NCBI GenBank assembly: GCA_964036045.1
Contig: OZ038378.1
Location: 181,598,001-181,662,000 of the forward strand
DNA: 64,000 nucleotides
Direction of reading: 5' to 3'
Source: Eutreptiella sp. 'Long Island Sound 2002'
Taxonomy: Eukaryota; Protista; Euglenida
This document shows positions 15,601 to 24,600 of the stretch, in pieces (within the stretch, counting starts at the first letter, position 1; every line of letters starts with the position of its first letter). The notes under the pieces were generated by a model. That model did not search any database, was not told the origin of the DNA, and saw only the letters and a list, made by a program, of their open reading frames with translations. The translations under genes and the position numbers were made by a program.

Positions 15601-18600
15601 TGCGTGCGTGCGTGCGTGCGTGTGTGTGTGTGTGTGTGTGTGTGTGTGTGCGTGCGTGTGCGTGTGCGTGTGTGTGTGTGTGTGTGTGTGTGTGTGTGTG
15701 TGTGTGTGCGTGTGCGTGTGCGTGTGCGTGTGCGTGCGCGTGCGTGCCTGCGTGCGTGCCTGCGTGCGCGCCTGTCTGCCTGCGTGCGTGCGTGCGTGCG
15801 TGCGTGCGTGCGTGCCTGCGTGCGTGCGTGCGTGCGTGTGCGTGCGTGCGTGCGTGCGTGCGTGCCTGCGTGCGTGCGTGCGTGCGTGCCTGCGTGCGTG
15901 CGTGCGTGCGTGCGTGCGTGCGTGCGTGTGTGTGTGTGTGTGTGTGTATGTGTGTGATCTGTACTTTTGGAGGTGGATCCTTGTGCAGCGTTGGGCTGGA
16001 CGCCCCATTTGGCTCAGGTCTGCTGAGGCCTCTTTGTGACGTTGTTTCCCTCCCTTCTGCGGAATCAGAACCTCTGTATTTTACTGGCTAAGTATCCAGA
16101 GTGTTTGCTCTCCCGTGCCTCGTCACGAAAAGCGGGCGGGCGACATCCTCGGCCACGGTCTCCTCCAGCCCCCGTGGAACTGGGGCAGGTGGGGACGGAG
16201 GGGGGGGTGTTTTCGGCCTCCTGCGCTTGGGGGCTGGAGGGGTGGGGGGTTGGTGTGGGGACCTCAGCAGACCCGTTGAGATACGTGCAGGCCCTTGCAG
16301 GCGTGGTCGTTTGTTGGGCAGTTGTGCATGTGCAGCAAGTGGGCGTTTCCGGCGCGCAGGCACTGGGGTGCACACTTTATGGTGTCCCCGCTGACAGCAG
16401 TGGCGCACTCCCCTTTGCTTGAGTGTGCACCTCGGGCACGGTGGCAGGCCATGCAGTGGGCACAGTTGCAGTTGCGGTCTGCGTGCTATGTGGTCATCAG
16501 CGTGATGTCCCAGCGCACAGCACGCTTCAGCTGTGCGCCGAAATCTCTTGCAGGTCGTGCATGCGTCAGCCGAGTGCCGGGCACACTTTGACGGATCAGC
16601 CGGCGGCGCCGGTGGTGGCCCCCTGTGTGTGTTTGCGCGCCTGCGTGTCCCGGTGTAGGGGCGCTGTGGGAGCTTCCCATCCCCTATCACAGGGAAGAAA
16701 TCAGCTGCAAAGGAGGAGCAGCCCCCCCCCCCTTTGGCAAAAGTGGTCTGCTCCGAGGGCGGGGCCAGCCCCAACTGCAGATTCCCCTGGAGTGCACGCT
16801 GTAGCCGATGCTCCTCCACTTCCTGCGCTGTTCTGCGTGGCCTGTGTGTGTGCGGGCGCAGTTTGTGTATCCTGTTGAGACCAACCTTGGTGGCCCATGT
16901 GCGCTCACAGTATGCCGCTAACTGCTGAACGTGCATGTTCATGGCACTGCGGCAAGTGAAATAAGGGCGGCAGTTCAGGCCGCAGAGTGCCGGCCCCCCC
17001 AAAGGAACTAAAGAGCTGCAGCGTGTGACCACACGCGCCGGATGCAGATGGCCTTTGGTGACCAGGCGCTGCGCATTTGCCATTGCCAGTCGTAAGACCC
17101 GGCCTCTCTCTTGCAGCGAAAGGGTGGTGCCCTTAAATTTTGCCTGTGGAGCGTGTGGGAGGGTGCGTTGCGCAAATTCCTCAAAGTCCAGTGCAAGTTC
17201 CAAGAACGTCACCGTGCCTGGTTCAGGGGCCCAGTGCAGTTCCCTCAGCCAGCGCAGCAGGTCCGCCAAAAAGGGCATTTCCCACTGCCATTCCACCTTC
17301 TTAGGGGTACGCAAAAGAAGTAACCCTTTGTCTTCCGGTCTGGGGAGGGGTCCCACCAGTTGGTGGTACGGGTATTGCCGAAGCTGCTGTGAGAGGCTCG
17401 ACCCCATGAAAAGCATGGGGGATTGTGTGTCTCGTAACTTGCGGGCCTGCAAGACGGCTACTAACATATTGTGCAGAGCTGTCATGAATGCGAGCGCTGT
17501 CCCTGACTTGACGCTGTCTGTGTCTAACTCTGGGGCTAACCCACAAAGTCGTAAACATGAGGGCCACTGGTCCATGAGGGGAAGGCCTGTGATCTGTGCT
17601 GCCGCCGTCCTGATGCCCGGCAGGTGGGTGTCCCGCACCGTGCTCCAGGCTGAACACTGCCAAAAAATGTGCTCCTCGTTTTCCGGAGCATTGCCGCAGT
17701 ACGGGCACGTGGATGTGGCTCGCATGCCACGTTGATAGGCCCGGAGGGCTGTCCAGGTTGCTCCTGATAGGATGCCCCGCAGGAGAGAGCGCTGTAGCTC
17801 TGTGGCAAATGACGCTATGCTGGGCTGGACCAGGCGCCGGCATGTGGTGTAATGAGCCCCCGCGAACAGGCGGGGACGCCTCTGAACCAGGCTGTCCAGC
17901 ATTTGCGAGCGCAGCTGCTCACGTACCTCGTGCTTGACAGTGTTTTTATCCCCGTATAGGAGGAGGGGTTCCTGGCGCCCAGGCACTTTCCATCCCCACC
18001 ATCCCTGCGTAGCGACCCAGCCACACTCCTGTGCTGTGGACATGGCTCGGCCGTATGGGCCGGAGCCTTTGTGAAATGATGTCATCTCCCAAATGGCCTG
18101 GGCCGTGATCTGTCCAGCACCCCTGGTGCGACACAGCTGGGATAGCCACAGGATGCGATGATACTTAAGTACCAGGGTGGGTGCAATCCGGTGCCCTTTG
18201 CACAGCAAGGTGAAAAAAATTTCTTTGGCCCTACCGGGCCGTGACCGTCCCCAAATGGTCTGCATGACCTTAGTCTCGAAGGGCAGGAGGTCCCTGGGCT
18301 GAAGTGGCACTATTTCTGCTGCGTGCAGGCCAGTGGCCGTGATCATTGTGGAGATGATGTCGCATCTCCTTTCAAAATTGCCCTGAGCGCCATGCACCCT
18401 ACCCAGGAGGCTGCAGGCTCTGGAAATCCTTTTCTTGATGAGCGGTCCTGAACAAGTCGCGTCCGTGGTGCGGACCCCCGCGCCCAGGGACTTAAACTCA
18501 GAAGAGATAGGGAAGGGCACCCCCTGTAATGCTGCCTTCACTGGGTGACGGGCGTCTGACGAAAAACCGACAGATTTCTTCGCGTTCACCCCTTGACCCG

Positions 18601-21600: not shown

Positions 21601-24600
21601 GAAATACCATAGCCTCTCACTCTCACTCGTGTCACTGGGGGGGTGAGTTGTATGCCCAACAGTCCTGCGATCTCCTCCCTGGTTTCGGGCAAGACAGCCC
21701 CCCCCCATACTCGTACCCCGAGTCTGTCGTCCTTGTCCCCTGCCATGAGGCCTGCGAACCAAGGCTGCTTGCTTAATCTGCGCCACTGCTCCGAAATGGA
21801 GCGCTTGTTGGATGGAGGGAGCTTGACCCAGACCATGTTGGCCTTCAGGTCATCGACATCGACGGTTTTGCTCATAAACAACCTGTATTCCAGGCCGACG
21901 ATTTTGCCACTGCTGCAGAGCACCTGCTTAGCCATGGGCGCTGGTAGCACCACCGTGACTTCATACTTGCTACCCCTCTTGCCCACTTGCATGGGTGGGG
22001 GACTGGTGAGAGCCGGCTGGAGTAGGGGGGCTGTCAGCTCCCAGCACGTGTTTTCAGCCCAGCGGGATGCCTTGACTTTGGTGCTGTCCTGTCCCGCGCG
22101 CAGTACGGAAGGGTCTAAGCAGCACACTATCCGAATTGCGGCTTTGTCCTGAGGTAGAACCTCTGGCTCCGTGTCCTTTCCTTCAACTCCGTCCCTGGGT
22201 CGTTCCCAGCAAAGCAGAATGGAATGCTCAGGCGGGATCACAGTCACACCCGGGTCTCTCTTGACTTCCCAAGACATACGTTTGGTAACGACCTTGATAC
22301 TGAGAATGAAATCCTTGATATGTAAGCACTCCCGTGAGCTGCCAAGCGCTGCCAGAATGCCTGGCACATTGACCACTCCTCGTCTGCAATTCGTCGCTAG
22401 CACGTGTGCGCTGACGCTCTGGATGCTGTCATATTTCATTAGAGCCTGTGTTGCTATCGCGTGCGCTTCCGCCAGCGGCTGTCCCACAAGCAAGACGTGT
22501 TCGAAGGCCTTCGCCGTGGCCTCTGTGACTTTCCAATCATTGACAGGCTTGTTTGCTCCTATCTGTTGCAGCGATTTGAGTGCGGTCTTGTGCTCTCCCT
22601 GGTAGATGCGGCGCCCTTGGACCGCAGTGAAGCCGTATTTGCTCTCAATCTCATGCACCGCAGTCGCCGTGGGCTGCAGTGGTTCCCCCAGGTCTGGGAC
22701 ATCCTGCACGACAAGCCTGCTTTGGGTTTTCATTCGTCGTTGTAGCGCCTCCCGGTATGAGGGGGTTTCATCCTTGGCCGCATTGGCCTGTGCTTTCGAG
22801 GGTGTAAGCGTACCTCCTGCCGCTTGCAGCGCCGCGCGCAAATCTTTGACAGTGCCTCTCAGTTCCCGGATAATGCCGAGGAGCTCCTCTTCCCTTGTAG
22901 TTGCAGCTGGAGTAGCAGCAGCGACAGATGCCGTTGGCTTCGGCTTCGGCGAGCTCCGCCCACTGAGTAGTGGCGCAAGGGCAGCAGCCAGAGCTTCCAG
23001 GAGCTCCGGGCGCTGCAATGCTTCCAAAATTTCATGCGTGATTGCGGACATTTTGTGTGACCCGTGAGGTCGTGCCAGGCAGGGGGTTCACCAGCCCAGG
23101 GGCCGCCCGTGTAGTTGAGGTTACCGATGTACGTGCCTGTTTGGCTTTCGGTTGGGTATGCAGTGTCACCAGCTGGCAGGCACCAAACAAAACACCTGTG
23201 TGTGTATGTGTGTGTGTGTGTGTGTGCGTGTGTGTGTGTGTGTGTGTGTGTGTGTGTGTGTGTGTGTGCGTGGTGTGCGTGCGTGCGTGCGTGCGTGCGT
23301 GCGTGCGTGCGTGCGTGCGTGCGTGCGTGCGTGCCTGCGTGCCTGCGTGCGTGCGTGCGTGCCTGCGTGCGTGCGTGCGTGCGTGCGTGTGCGTGCGTGT
23401 GTGTGCGTGCCTGCGTGCCTGCGTGCGTGCGTGCGTGCGTGCGTGCGTGCGTGTGCGTGCGTGCGTGCGTGCGTGCGTGCGTGTGTGTGTGTGTGTGTGT
23501 GTGTGTGTGTGTGTGCGTGCGTGTGCGTGTGTGTGTGTGTGTGTGTGTGTGTGTGTGTGTGTGTGTGTGCGTGTGCGTGTGCGTGTGCGTGTGCGTGCGC
23601 GTGCGTGCCTGCGTGCGTGCCTGCGTGCGCGCCTGTCTGCCTGCGTGCGTGCGTGCGTGCGTGCGTGCGTGCGTGCCTGCGTGCGTGCGTGCGTGCGTGC
23701 GTGCGTGTGCGTGCGTGCGTGCGTGCGTGCGTGCCTGCGTGCGTGCGTGCGTGCGTGCCTGCGTGCGTGCGTGCGTGCGTGCGTGTGTGTGTGTGTGTGT
23801 GTGTGTGTGTATGTGTGTGTGTGTGTGTGTGCGTGTGTGTGTGTGTGTGTGTGTGTGTGTGTGTGTGTGCGTGGTGTGCGTGCGTGCGTGCGTGCGTGCG
23901 TGCGTGCGTGCGTGCGTGCGTGCGTGCGTGCGTGCCTGCGTGCCTGCGTGCGTGCGTGCCTGCGTGCCTGCGTGCGTGCGTGCGTGCGTGCGTGCGTGCG
24001 TGCGTGCGTGCGTGTGCGTGCGTGTGTGTGCGTGCCTGCGTGCCTGCGTGCGTGCGTGCGTGCGTGCGTGCGTGCGTGCGTGTGCGTGCGTGCGTGCGTG
24101 CGTGCGTGTGTGTGTGTGTGTGTGTGTGTGTGTGTGTGCGTGTGTGCGTGTGCGCGTGTGTGTGTGTGTGTGTGTGTGTGTGTGTGTGTGTGTGTGTGTG
24201 TGTGTGTGTGTGTGTGTGTGTGTGTGTGCGTGGTGTGCGTGCGTGCGTGCGTGCCTGCGTGCGTGCGTGCGTGCGTGTGCGTGTGTGCGTGCGTGCGTGC
24301 CTGCGTGCCTGCGTGCCTGCGTGCGTGCGTGCGTGCGTGTGCGTGCGTGCGTGCGTGCGTGTGCGTGCCTGCGTGCCTGCCTGCCTGCGTGCGTGCGTGC
24401 GTGCGTGTGCGTGCGTGCGTGCGTGCGTGCGTGTGCGTGCGTGCGTGCGTGCGTGTGCGTGCGTGCGTGCGTGCGTGCGTGTGTGTGTGTGTGTGTGTGT
24501 GCGTGTGTGCGTGTGCGTGTGCGCGCGCGCGCGCGTGTGTGTGTGTGTGTGTGTGCGTGCGTGTGTGTGTGTGTGTGTGTGTGTGTGTGTGTGTGTGTGT

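Follow-up and report, generated by a model that had tools for sequence, protein, structure and literature searches.

The stretch of DNA considered here, which we call the window, comprises 64,000 nucleotides (nt) of the euglenid Eutreptiella sp. 'Long Island Sound 2002' (assembly GCA_964036045.1, contig OZ038378.1, positions 181,598,001 to 181,662,000) and carries, on its minus strand and within an array of GT and GTGC repeats, a complete copy of a long interspersed element (LINE). Coordinates are positions within the window unless a contig or locus is named. The structure of this copy and its host array, together with the flanks of other copies in the same genome, leads us to conclude, with a probability of about 90%, that the element represents a young, abundant family of LINEs with an apurinic/apyrimidinic endonuclease (APE) that insert specifically, and in a single orientation, into (CA)n tracts of ~18-20 bp or more. 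The features of the locus are as follows, with the element first, in the direction in which it is read, and the array after it:

15957-23196, minus strand: full-length LINE copy of 7,240 bp, 5' GGTGTTTT ... AAAGTACAGAT 3'
23138-23196, minus strand: candidate hepatitis delta virus (HDV)-like ribozyme lacking P4, nt 1-59 of the element, threaded by hand and checked by script
23052-23196, minus strand: 5' untranslated region (UTR), 145 nt
21231-23051, minus strand: open reading frame (ORF) 1, 606 amino acids (aa), intact
16088-21199, minus strand: ORF2, 1,703 open codons and the stop
20435-21199, minus strand: APE-type endonuclease domain, about aa 1-255 of ORF2
18506-19261, minus strand: reverse transcriptase (RT) core, RVT_1 with YADD (Pfam E 3.6e-13)
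17654-17707, minus strand: CCHC motif CPYC-x8-H-x4-C, zf-RVT-like (Pfam zf-RVT 1e-4), at aa 1165
16853-17377, minus strand: conserved C-terminal domain, 175 aa after the CCHC motif, ...VTFLELALDFE...
15957-16087, minus strand: 3' UTR, 131 nt, with a predicted stem-loop and without poly(A)
14206-15956: left part of the GT/GTGC array, with a paralogous unfilled site at 15348-15365
23197-24819: right part of the GT/GTGC array, with a paralogous unfilled site at 23802-23819
15939-15956: target-site duplication (TSD) beside the 3' end of the element, CACACACATACACACACA on the element strand
23197-23214: TSD beside the 5' end of the element

The preliminary description of this DNA had read the element, at 7240 bp, as holding an uninterrupted ORF1 of 606 aa and an ORF2 of about 1700 aa, and both frames are indeed open. 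The open codons of ORF2 span 16091-21199 on the minus strand, the program-made list of ORFs giving 16088-21157 on the same strand and 1689 aa from a TTG. The frame opens directly after a TGA and contains no in-frame ATG ahead of the catalytic Asn of the endonuclease, which is already among the first residues, VTGPLKFVQTNVTSL; ORF2 would therefore have to be translated without a conventional AUG. The 3' UTR folds somewhat better than shuffled sequences (z = -2.0), and the minus strand of the element ends in ...AAAAGTACAGAT and passes directly, without poly(A), into the duplicated CA tract, so that this part of the earlier account, too, was borne out at the junction.

The array that hosts the element totals 3.37 kb and has a higher-order period of ~600 bp, and this periodicity makes the insertion event legible to the base. 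The 18-mer TGTGTGTGTATGTGTGTG adjoins both ends of the element exactly and occurs again at 15348 and 23802; more broadly, the (GT)n block with a TA variant recurs at 15348, 15939 (= 23197) and 23802. The two additional occurrences occupy equivalent positions in neighbouring ~600-bp units, where the 18-mer is single and the target uninterrupted, and so they do not weaken the case for a duplication. When the units are aligned, each shows GTGC repeats, (GT)n, the 18-mer once, (GT)n and then GCGTGGTGTGCGTGC; the left flank of the element matches the upstream half of the unfilled units, and the right flank matches their downstream half. It follows that exactly 18 bp were duplicated and that the array supplies its own empty site; ~85 bp of (GT)n were already present before the insertion. 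Because the TSD copy, TA variant included, lies directly against the final base of the element, the window copy has no extra CA tail, templated or untemplated. The earlier interpretation of the shared 18-mer, with its rare TA variant, as a TSD is thus confirmed by the comparison of array units.

The same pattern extends across the 2.28-Gb assembly, in which a search with the full element gave 1,804 first-look candidates. The 3' end runs into (CA)n in 40/40 of the copies sampled, 20 of which form a second batch that consists entirely of GAT joined directly to (CA)n; the sequence upstream is (CA)n in all 20 copies that were fetched with flanks, so that these have the repeat on both sides. Four of the 20 are 5'-truncated, starting at nt 64, 87, 589 and 895 with the 3' end common to all, and the first bases of the shortened copies are C, CAC or ACAC, pointing to joining by CA microhomology. 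The full-length 5' end follows (CA)6 in at least 133 occurrences, compared with 2 of a form joined to a spliced leader (see below), and among 95 exact 5' ends, 91 come after CA, 2 after GA and 2 after the leader. The orientation is constant, the sense strand reading CA in every copy examined. The shortest CA flanks measure 18-21 bp upstream and 19-21 bp downstream, and many of the insertion sites are isolated tracts that would have been ~26 bp long before insertion. Given that CA/TG tracts of at least 18 bp make up only ~0.4% of the window outside the array, whereas all 40 sampled 3' ends, all 20 sampled 5' flanks and all 8 3' ends from subfamilies lie in such tracts, chance is excluded. TSDs with matching variants were found at L001, L004 and L019. 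The proposal that the element targets (CA)n, which had been made from the window copy, therefore holds for every copy examined, with one orientation and a TSD made of CA only, and the tabulation of flanks that had been suggested as its check came out in its favour among the sampled copies.

New copies often land in the CA spacer beside older ones, giving rise to head-to-tail arrays: a young copy adjoins an older one in 4 cases, separated by a CA spacer of 19-20 bp in 3 and of 85 bp in 1. Such tandem copies are to be expected if each insertion leaves a usable target beside itself. A different kind of tandem is formed by L020, L036 and L035 (G000:C8:63808520, 63823661 and 63840841), which lie 15-17 kb apart; the 3' flanks of L035 and L036 are identical and the sampled flank of L020 differs, so that L035 and L036, at least, represent one segmental duplication and not independent insertions.

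Several observations weigh against target specificity of this kind or limit the evidence for it. The copies were counted in a search that sampled the genome, so that the numbers are minimum values, and short exact patterns under-sample, a 20-mer carried by at least 40 copies having yielded 5 matches. No empty sites were found beyond the array of the window: L002 is flanked by a member of an old repeat family (72-77% identity), the copies of which stop ~7 nt before the CA tract, and in the attempt with L017, the repeated part of the flank likewise stops before the junction. In L010 and L011, a variant in the 3' flank lacks its mirror upstream, so that either a later mutation or a shorter TSD is needed. 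Finally, a TA lies at offset 9-10 from the 3' junction in 3/3 informative TSDs (L001, L004 and L019), and L001 and L004 share an identical 16-mer despite unrelated sites; the common offset could be due to chance, a weak preference or carry-over from the source copy.

Among the alternatives, the one that survives best concerns the mechanism only and leaves the specificity itself in place. Under this scenario, the endonuclease is relaxed, and specificity comes mainly from RNA-DNA pairing, the (CA)n tail of a read-through transcript selecting nicks on the TG strand. The lack of poly(A) and the invariable register of the 3' junction, GAT followed directly by CA, fit this possibility well, as do the ~19 bp of CA or more that are always left downstream of the first nick, the evidence that transcripts do run in from flanking CA, with the leader spliced onto an AG that the flank helps to make, and the variation of the 3' terminal sequence (GAT, GAG, ATG and GAA) among CA-targeting families whose target is constant. 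In the window, however, the TSD with its TA variant stands intact against the last element base, with no CA units gained or lost; moreover, the upstream flank also keeps at least 18 bp of CA, so that the second nick fell within the repeat as well, which pairing of the 3' tail does not account for. The known microsatellite- and telomere-specific APE LINEs are thought, furthermore, to be mainly endonuclease-driven (PMC3812793). We consider pairing as the principal determinant unlikely, but worth keeping in mind, and prefer the view that the specificity resides in the element's own protein.

Much less credible, in our opinion, is the absence of any target specificity, with the element bringing along its own (CA)n 3' tail and the upstream CA arising from the duplication or from microhomology. 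CA does follow the 3' end of every copy, and many flanks measure only 19-23 bp, close to the length of the TSD. Yet the array units show that (GT)n with the TA variant was there beforehand and that only 18 bp were duplicated; copies truncated at differing 5' positions still have (CA)n directly upstream; long tracts lie on both sides at many sites (L005, L018 and L003); and new copies enter the CA spacers of older ones, all of which makes this explanation very improbable.

Slightly less probable still is passive accumulation, that is, broad insertion followed by preferential survival or assembly in microsatellite-rich regions of low recombination, a scenario that has reportedly been proposed for Waldo-A/B in Drosophila. 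The location of the window copy within a 3.4-kb simple-repeat array and the length of some CA tracts, which reach hundreds of bp (L018), are what one might expect from such sorting, but the junctions are base-exact, with one orientation in 48/48 3' ends, many targets are isolated ~26-bp tracts in unique sequence (L002, L008, L034, L040 and L043), and copies with a divergence of 0.15-0.75% are too young for survival sorting. Chimeric joins of repeat and element during assembly can be dismissed almost entirely, even though simple repeats are hard to assemble and metagenome contigs of relatives end within CA tracts, given that junctions of this type occur at more than 130 sites spread over at least 25 contigs, in a second assembly (L079) and in metagenomes assembled independently, and that both the TSD and the period of the array agree to the base.

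The family also shows clear signs of youth. The window copy is 99.2-99.7% identical to at least 17 other near-full-length copies, the pairwise divergence among sampled copies of the young family is 0.15-0.75%, and both ORFs are open in 11 of the 17 longest sampled copies (15 full-length and 2 lacking 63-86 nt at the 5' end), the window copy included. An older-subfamily copy, L019, has diverged by 5% and is also found in CA with a matching TSD. The element was previously called recently inserted and possibly active; the open frames and the low divergence are in line with the former and allow the latter to be raised to probably active.

The element is an APE-type non-LTR (long terminal repeat) retrotransposon, and it has the marks of target-primed reverse transcription, namely a TSD, 5'-truncated copies and neither LTRs nor terminal inverted repeats. 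In a comparison with the PDB, the family profile finds the L1 endonuclease (6e-7) and ExoIII (1e-3) across positions 8-254; within the family, the E, D, N, D and H columns do not vary, PF03372 is recorded for relatives, and the motifs can be read directly in ORF2 (QTN...MEET...DANFN...RID...GHAPV). Endonucleases of the R1 clade, of which the PDB holds those of TRAS1 and R1Bm, are absent from the matches of the profile at E<=1. In the RT, with its YADD at aa 839 of ORF2, the family profile matches human L1 ORF2p at 3e-47 and R2 proteins at 3e-22 and weaker, and the best match among solved structures is again L1 ORF2p, with 164 bits compared to 81 for R2, L1 being the only APE LINE that has been fully solved. 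We read this as an L1/Tx1-like architecture in a euglenozoan lineage; the ESM Atlas gave generic RT clusters.

Beyond the RT, ORF2 carries a C-terminal extension of about 540 aa. The 175-aa block after the CCHC motif is kept across the CA-flanked families; the C-terminus has no Pfam match, and the AlphaFold2 (AF2) model of the conserved domain is poor (pLDDT 57) and helical. No RNase H family was detected in ORF2 or in its C-terminal 539 aa at E<=1 (Pfam). Near the C-terminus, at 16379-16585 on the minus strand, lie two tandem Cys/His-rich motifs (C..C..C..CC..GHH) that are partly kept in relatives and are a candidate for a DNA-binding part of ORF2p. ORF1 and five homologues have no zinc knuckle or other Pfam match at E<=1; its AF2 model, which is weak (pLDDT 55), shows an N-terminal coiled coil followed by several alpha/beta modules, for which Foldseek returned only weak tandem-RRM or ferredoxin-like matches.

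The 5' end of the element raises a question of a different kind, that of how its RNA is made. HDV-like ribozymes are found at the 5' ends of several LINEs, namely R2, RTE and L1Tc of Trypanosoma cruzi, where they free the element RNA from a read-through transcript or co-transcript. We consider it somewhat more probable than not that the first 60 nt of the present element form a self-cleaving ribozyme of this type without P4. In the proposed threading, P1 pairs nt 1-6 with 30-35, with a G1.U35 wobble at the putative cleavage site, P2 pairs 8-14 with 53-59, P3 pairs 16-18 with 27-29 and closes an 8-nt loop L3, P1.1 pairs 24-25 with 36-37, and J4/2 reads ACC47GAAAG, the candidate catalytic C47 lying within ACCGAAAG. 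As drawn, the candidate has nested P1, P2, P3 and P1.1, with a G1.U wobble and C-G-A in J4/2; it differs from the known LINE ribozymes in the lack of P4, in the lack of an Rfam match and in that a spliced leader can replace it within the family.

Subfamilies A, A95, B and C2 all accommodate the threading, as does a lineage of 40% identity whose helices differ. Helix changes are compatible with pairing, U6.G30 becoming U-A in subfamily B and C25-G36 becoming U.G in L019, and a change from U.G to C-G separates L055 and L078. The 40%-identity lineage can be given a like topology and spacing, in which P3 abuts P1, L3 is 8 nt long and CGA stands at nt 47, whereas the sequences of P1 and P3 differ from those of the window family, and P2 includes two U.U mismatches. 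Among dinucleotide shuffles, 0.05-0.09% satisfy a descriptor of this architecture, which is also satisfied at 2 of ~7,200 positions of the element and at ~45 loci when both window strands are counted. Because the descriptor was designed with the sequences already in view, these p-values are optimistic, and there are further points to be held against a ribozyme: a threshold as loose as E<=10 brings up no HDV-like family of Rfam at the 5' end, a covariance model derived from subfamilies A, B and C missed the 5' ends of L055 and L078, the 5' end of the 38%-identity family fails the descriptor, and one old, dead copy (L073) has an A.C mismatch in P1. Two other threadings were discarded, one with P1 formed by nt 1-7 and 36-42, which subfamily B breaks, and one with P1 on 48-54, which leaves no catalytic C.

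Two full-length copies, L013 (G000:C5:63264591) and a copy at G000:C11:18470818 on the minus strand, begin with a spliced leader. In both, (CA)n lies upstream of the leader, and the leader is joined at an AG to which the flank contributes its last A and the element its G1; L013 has a broken ORF2. The leader string TTTCTGAGTGTCTATTTTTTTTCG is carried by L013 and by L077, a relative from a metagenome, and is found exactly in two papers on Euglena (PMC5654406, PMC6242988); a leader of the Euglena gracilis type and an assembly of 2.28 Gb speak against a trypanosomatid host. A leader joined at the AG between flank and element requires an upstream outron, so that some transcripts must start upstream of the element, and the location of the leader-headed copies in (CA)n implies that trans-spliced RNA was retrotransposed into the usual target. 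In L077, positions 105-160 comprise a complete spliced leader between (CA)n and the 5' UTR, and the leader may be the regular 5' end in the family of that element.

These observations can be combined into a tentative mechanism. Integration would proceed by target-primed reverse transcription, the first nick being made in register on the TG strand (TG^TG) and providing the primer for a cDNA that begins at the terminal U of the RNA, and the second being made on the CA strand (CA^CA), 18 bp away. Both nicks would have to fall inside the repeat, which would account for the 18-20 bp or more of CA that remain in each flank. Specificity would stem from the endonuclease or from another DNA-binding part of ORF2p, possibly assisted by pairing of the (CA)n tail of read-through RNA with the TG primer strand. 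The element RNA would be produced, at least in part, by read-through from upstream, and its 5' end would usually be set by the HDV-like ribozyme in the first 60 nt, yielding the invariant start GGUGUUUU; rarely, the spliced leader would be trans-spliced onto the AG formed by the flanking A and G1, and that RNA would be copied back. ORF2 would be translated by a route other than a conventional AUG. In its widest form, the proposal is that euglenids hold an old, monophyletic and active clade of (CA)n-specific LINEs that is independent of the animal R1 and Tx1 elements and in which the 5' end of the RNA is fixed interchangeably by a ribozyme or by leader capture; we give this composite scenario slightly less than an even chance. 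If true, it would offer a natural setting for competition between ribozyme processing and trans-splicing over one retrotransposon RNA, as well as a compact machine for (CA)n-directed integration.

The breadth of the (CA)n habit is apparent from the relatives of the element, the following of which have repeat flanks:

Subfamilies B and C, same genome: 81-85% aa identity to ORF2; 8/8 3' ends read ...AAAGTACAGA and then G or T, followed directly by (CA)n
L077, metagenome ERZ27247702: 47% identity; (CA)n, spliced leader, 5' UTR and ORF1
L055 and L078, metagenomes: about 40% identity; flanks of (CA)11 to (CA)26, head-to-tail in CA
L079, another, Euglena-like assembly: 38% identity; (CA)n on both sides

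Several open frames of 1,707 aa are present in subfamily B, and the 38%-identity family ends in ...AGAATGAA, followed by (CA)18. A HMMER scan over 1.84 billion representative proteins returned 262 at E<=1e-30, among which the nearest named outsiders are proteins from diplonemid transcriptomes (Rhynchopus and Diplonema), with 30-32% identity. In a FastTree tree of 37 ORF2 proteins, which is unrooted and has local supports only and no labelled references, five CA-flanked families and two families of unknown target form one clade with 100% local support, and a separate clade includes the poly(A)-tailed relative L057 together with a relative (L081-L083) specific for 18S ribosomal DNA (rDNA). The CA habit thus appears to belong to the whole clade and is apparently old. 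The idea that it evolved independently is supported indirectly: the nearest relatives are euglenid and diplonemid LINEs, and the family profile meets none of the solved endonucleases of the R1 clade at E<=1, so that an origin separate from that of the insect R1 elements is likely, though not proven.

Two of these relatives merit mention for their own targets. L081, L082 and L083, from marine metagenomes (P0131, 1,183 aa; 32% RT identity), are located at the 3' end of the 18S ribosomal RNA gene, with GTAGGTGAACCTGC on both sides, and look like an 18S-rDNA-specific LINE in the sister clade. Within the CA-targeting clade itself, one member known from one copy, L058 (P0077, with a 2,253-aa ORF2), ends at ~8480-8520 in ...AAAATGAA, followed by (TTC)6, and may represent a target switch to (TTC)n.

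To our knowledge, all well-described microsatellite-specific APE LINEs come from animals. They include Mino on (AC)n, Waldo on (ACAY)n, Kibi on (TC)n and Koshi on (TTC)n (PMC3812793), MinoAg1 and Waldo being insect elements of the R1 clade (Kojima and Fujiwara 2003, summarised in PMC3812793) and Kibi and Koshi fish elements of the Tx1 clade (Kojima and Fujiwara 2004, via PMC3812793). With MinoAg1 and Waldo, the euglenid element shares the APE-type endonuclease, the sequence-specific insertion into AC-type microsatellites and the lack of a conventional poly(A)-dependent mode. It differs from them in its host, a euglenid protist, and in its nearest relatives, which are euglenid and diplonemid LINEs, as well as in an ORF1 without CCHC knuckles, a profile that matches the endonuclease of L1 but not the solved ones of the R1 clade (E<=1), an ORF2 of 1,703 aa with its 540-aa C-terminal extension, and the candidate ribozyme at the 5' end. 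Kibi and Koshi resemble it in microsatellite specificity and in the APE-RT-CCHC layout, and the solved structure closest to the element is that of L1 ORF2p; like Tx1, moreover, its lineage has several site-specific relatives, the 18S-rDNA-specific one among them. Unlike Kibi and Koshi, it targets (CA)n, in a euglenid host. A strong insertion bias for (CA)n, along with tandem arrangement, is also known in the Chlamys Penelope-like elements of green algae and protists (PMC8557442). These, however, combine a GIY-YIG endonuclease with a telomerase-like RT, in contrast to the APE, LINE RT and ORF1 found here.

Among the LINEs of Euglenozoa, with which the element shares its host group, SLACS, CRE and CZAR on the one hand and ingi and L1Tc on the other are the obvious points of comparison. 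SLACS and CRE are site-specific elements that use a restriction-like endonuclease and target spliced-leader genes, and ingi and L1Tc have an RNase H and a poly(A) end. The present element, by contrast, combines an N-terminal APE with a (CA)n target and lacks poly(A) as well as any detectable RNase H. Membership in the CRE/SLACS group is ruled out by the N-terminal APE and the (CA)n target, and membership in the ingi/L1Tc group by the lack of RNase H at E<=1 and of poly(A). The preliminary description was therefore right to set the element apart from the trypanosomatid ingi and CRE families, the N-terminal APE in place of a restriction-like nuclease and the undetected RNase H pointing the same way.

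The habit of inserting into microsatellites is thus known, and no new transposition mechanism is revealed; the novelty lies in the host lineage, in a specificity that spans the clade and is apparently old, in the candidate minimal ribozyme and in the alternative 5' end capped by the leader. The same microsatellite solution recurs in a distant protist lineage, where it appears to be the ancestral habit of a whole clade, and with more than 130 full-length 5' ends and many intact, near-identical copies, the family is probably active and amenable to test. Site-specific LINEs are the main natural models for the choice of harmless landing sites and are under development as gene-insertion tools. The coexistence of leader-headed copies with the ribozyme-type 5' end, in turn, offers a direct handle on how the RNAs of the element are made. 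Our literature search found no account of LINE families of Euglena or of their targets; the paper on the chromosome-level Euglena genome is confined to overall figures, with LINEs making up 1.5% of the genome and unclassified repeats 33% (PMC11252322).

The specificity described here also helps explain why CA/TG tracts are crowded with retroelements in a euglenid genome. Other LINEs associated with such tracts were encountered as well. The interval G000:C1:158232000-158253999 (L059/L060), 22 kb in all, includes a 4.6-kb (CA)n tract with fragments and full copies of other LINE families, which have no similarity to the window element by tblastn. They are inserted in the opposite orientation, with (TG)n on the sense strand, and their 3' ends have short tandem tails that read (GGTCA)n, (TGTCA)n and (TGCTTCA)n on the plus strand. 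Finally, in L080, AACACACACACA..TG is present on both sides (2539-2550 and ~10735-10746) of a LINE with 25% identity, an RNase H (RVT_3) and an OTU protease; this element, seen in one copy, could belong to yet another CA-associated lineage, one whose duplication is shorter.

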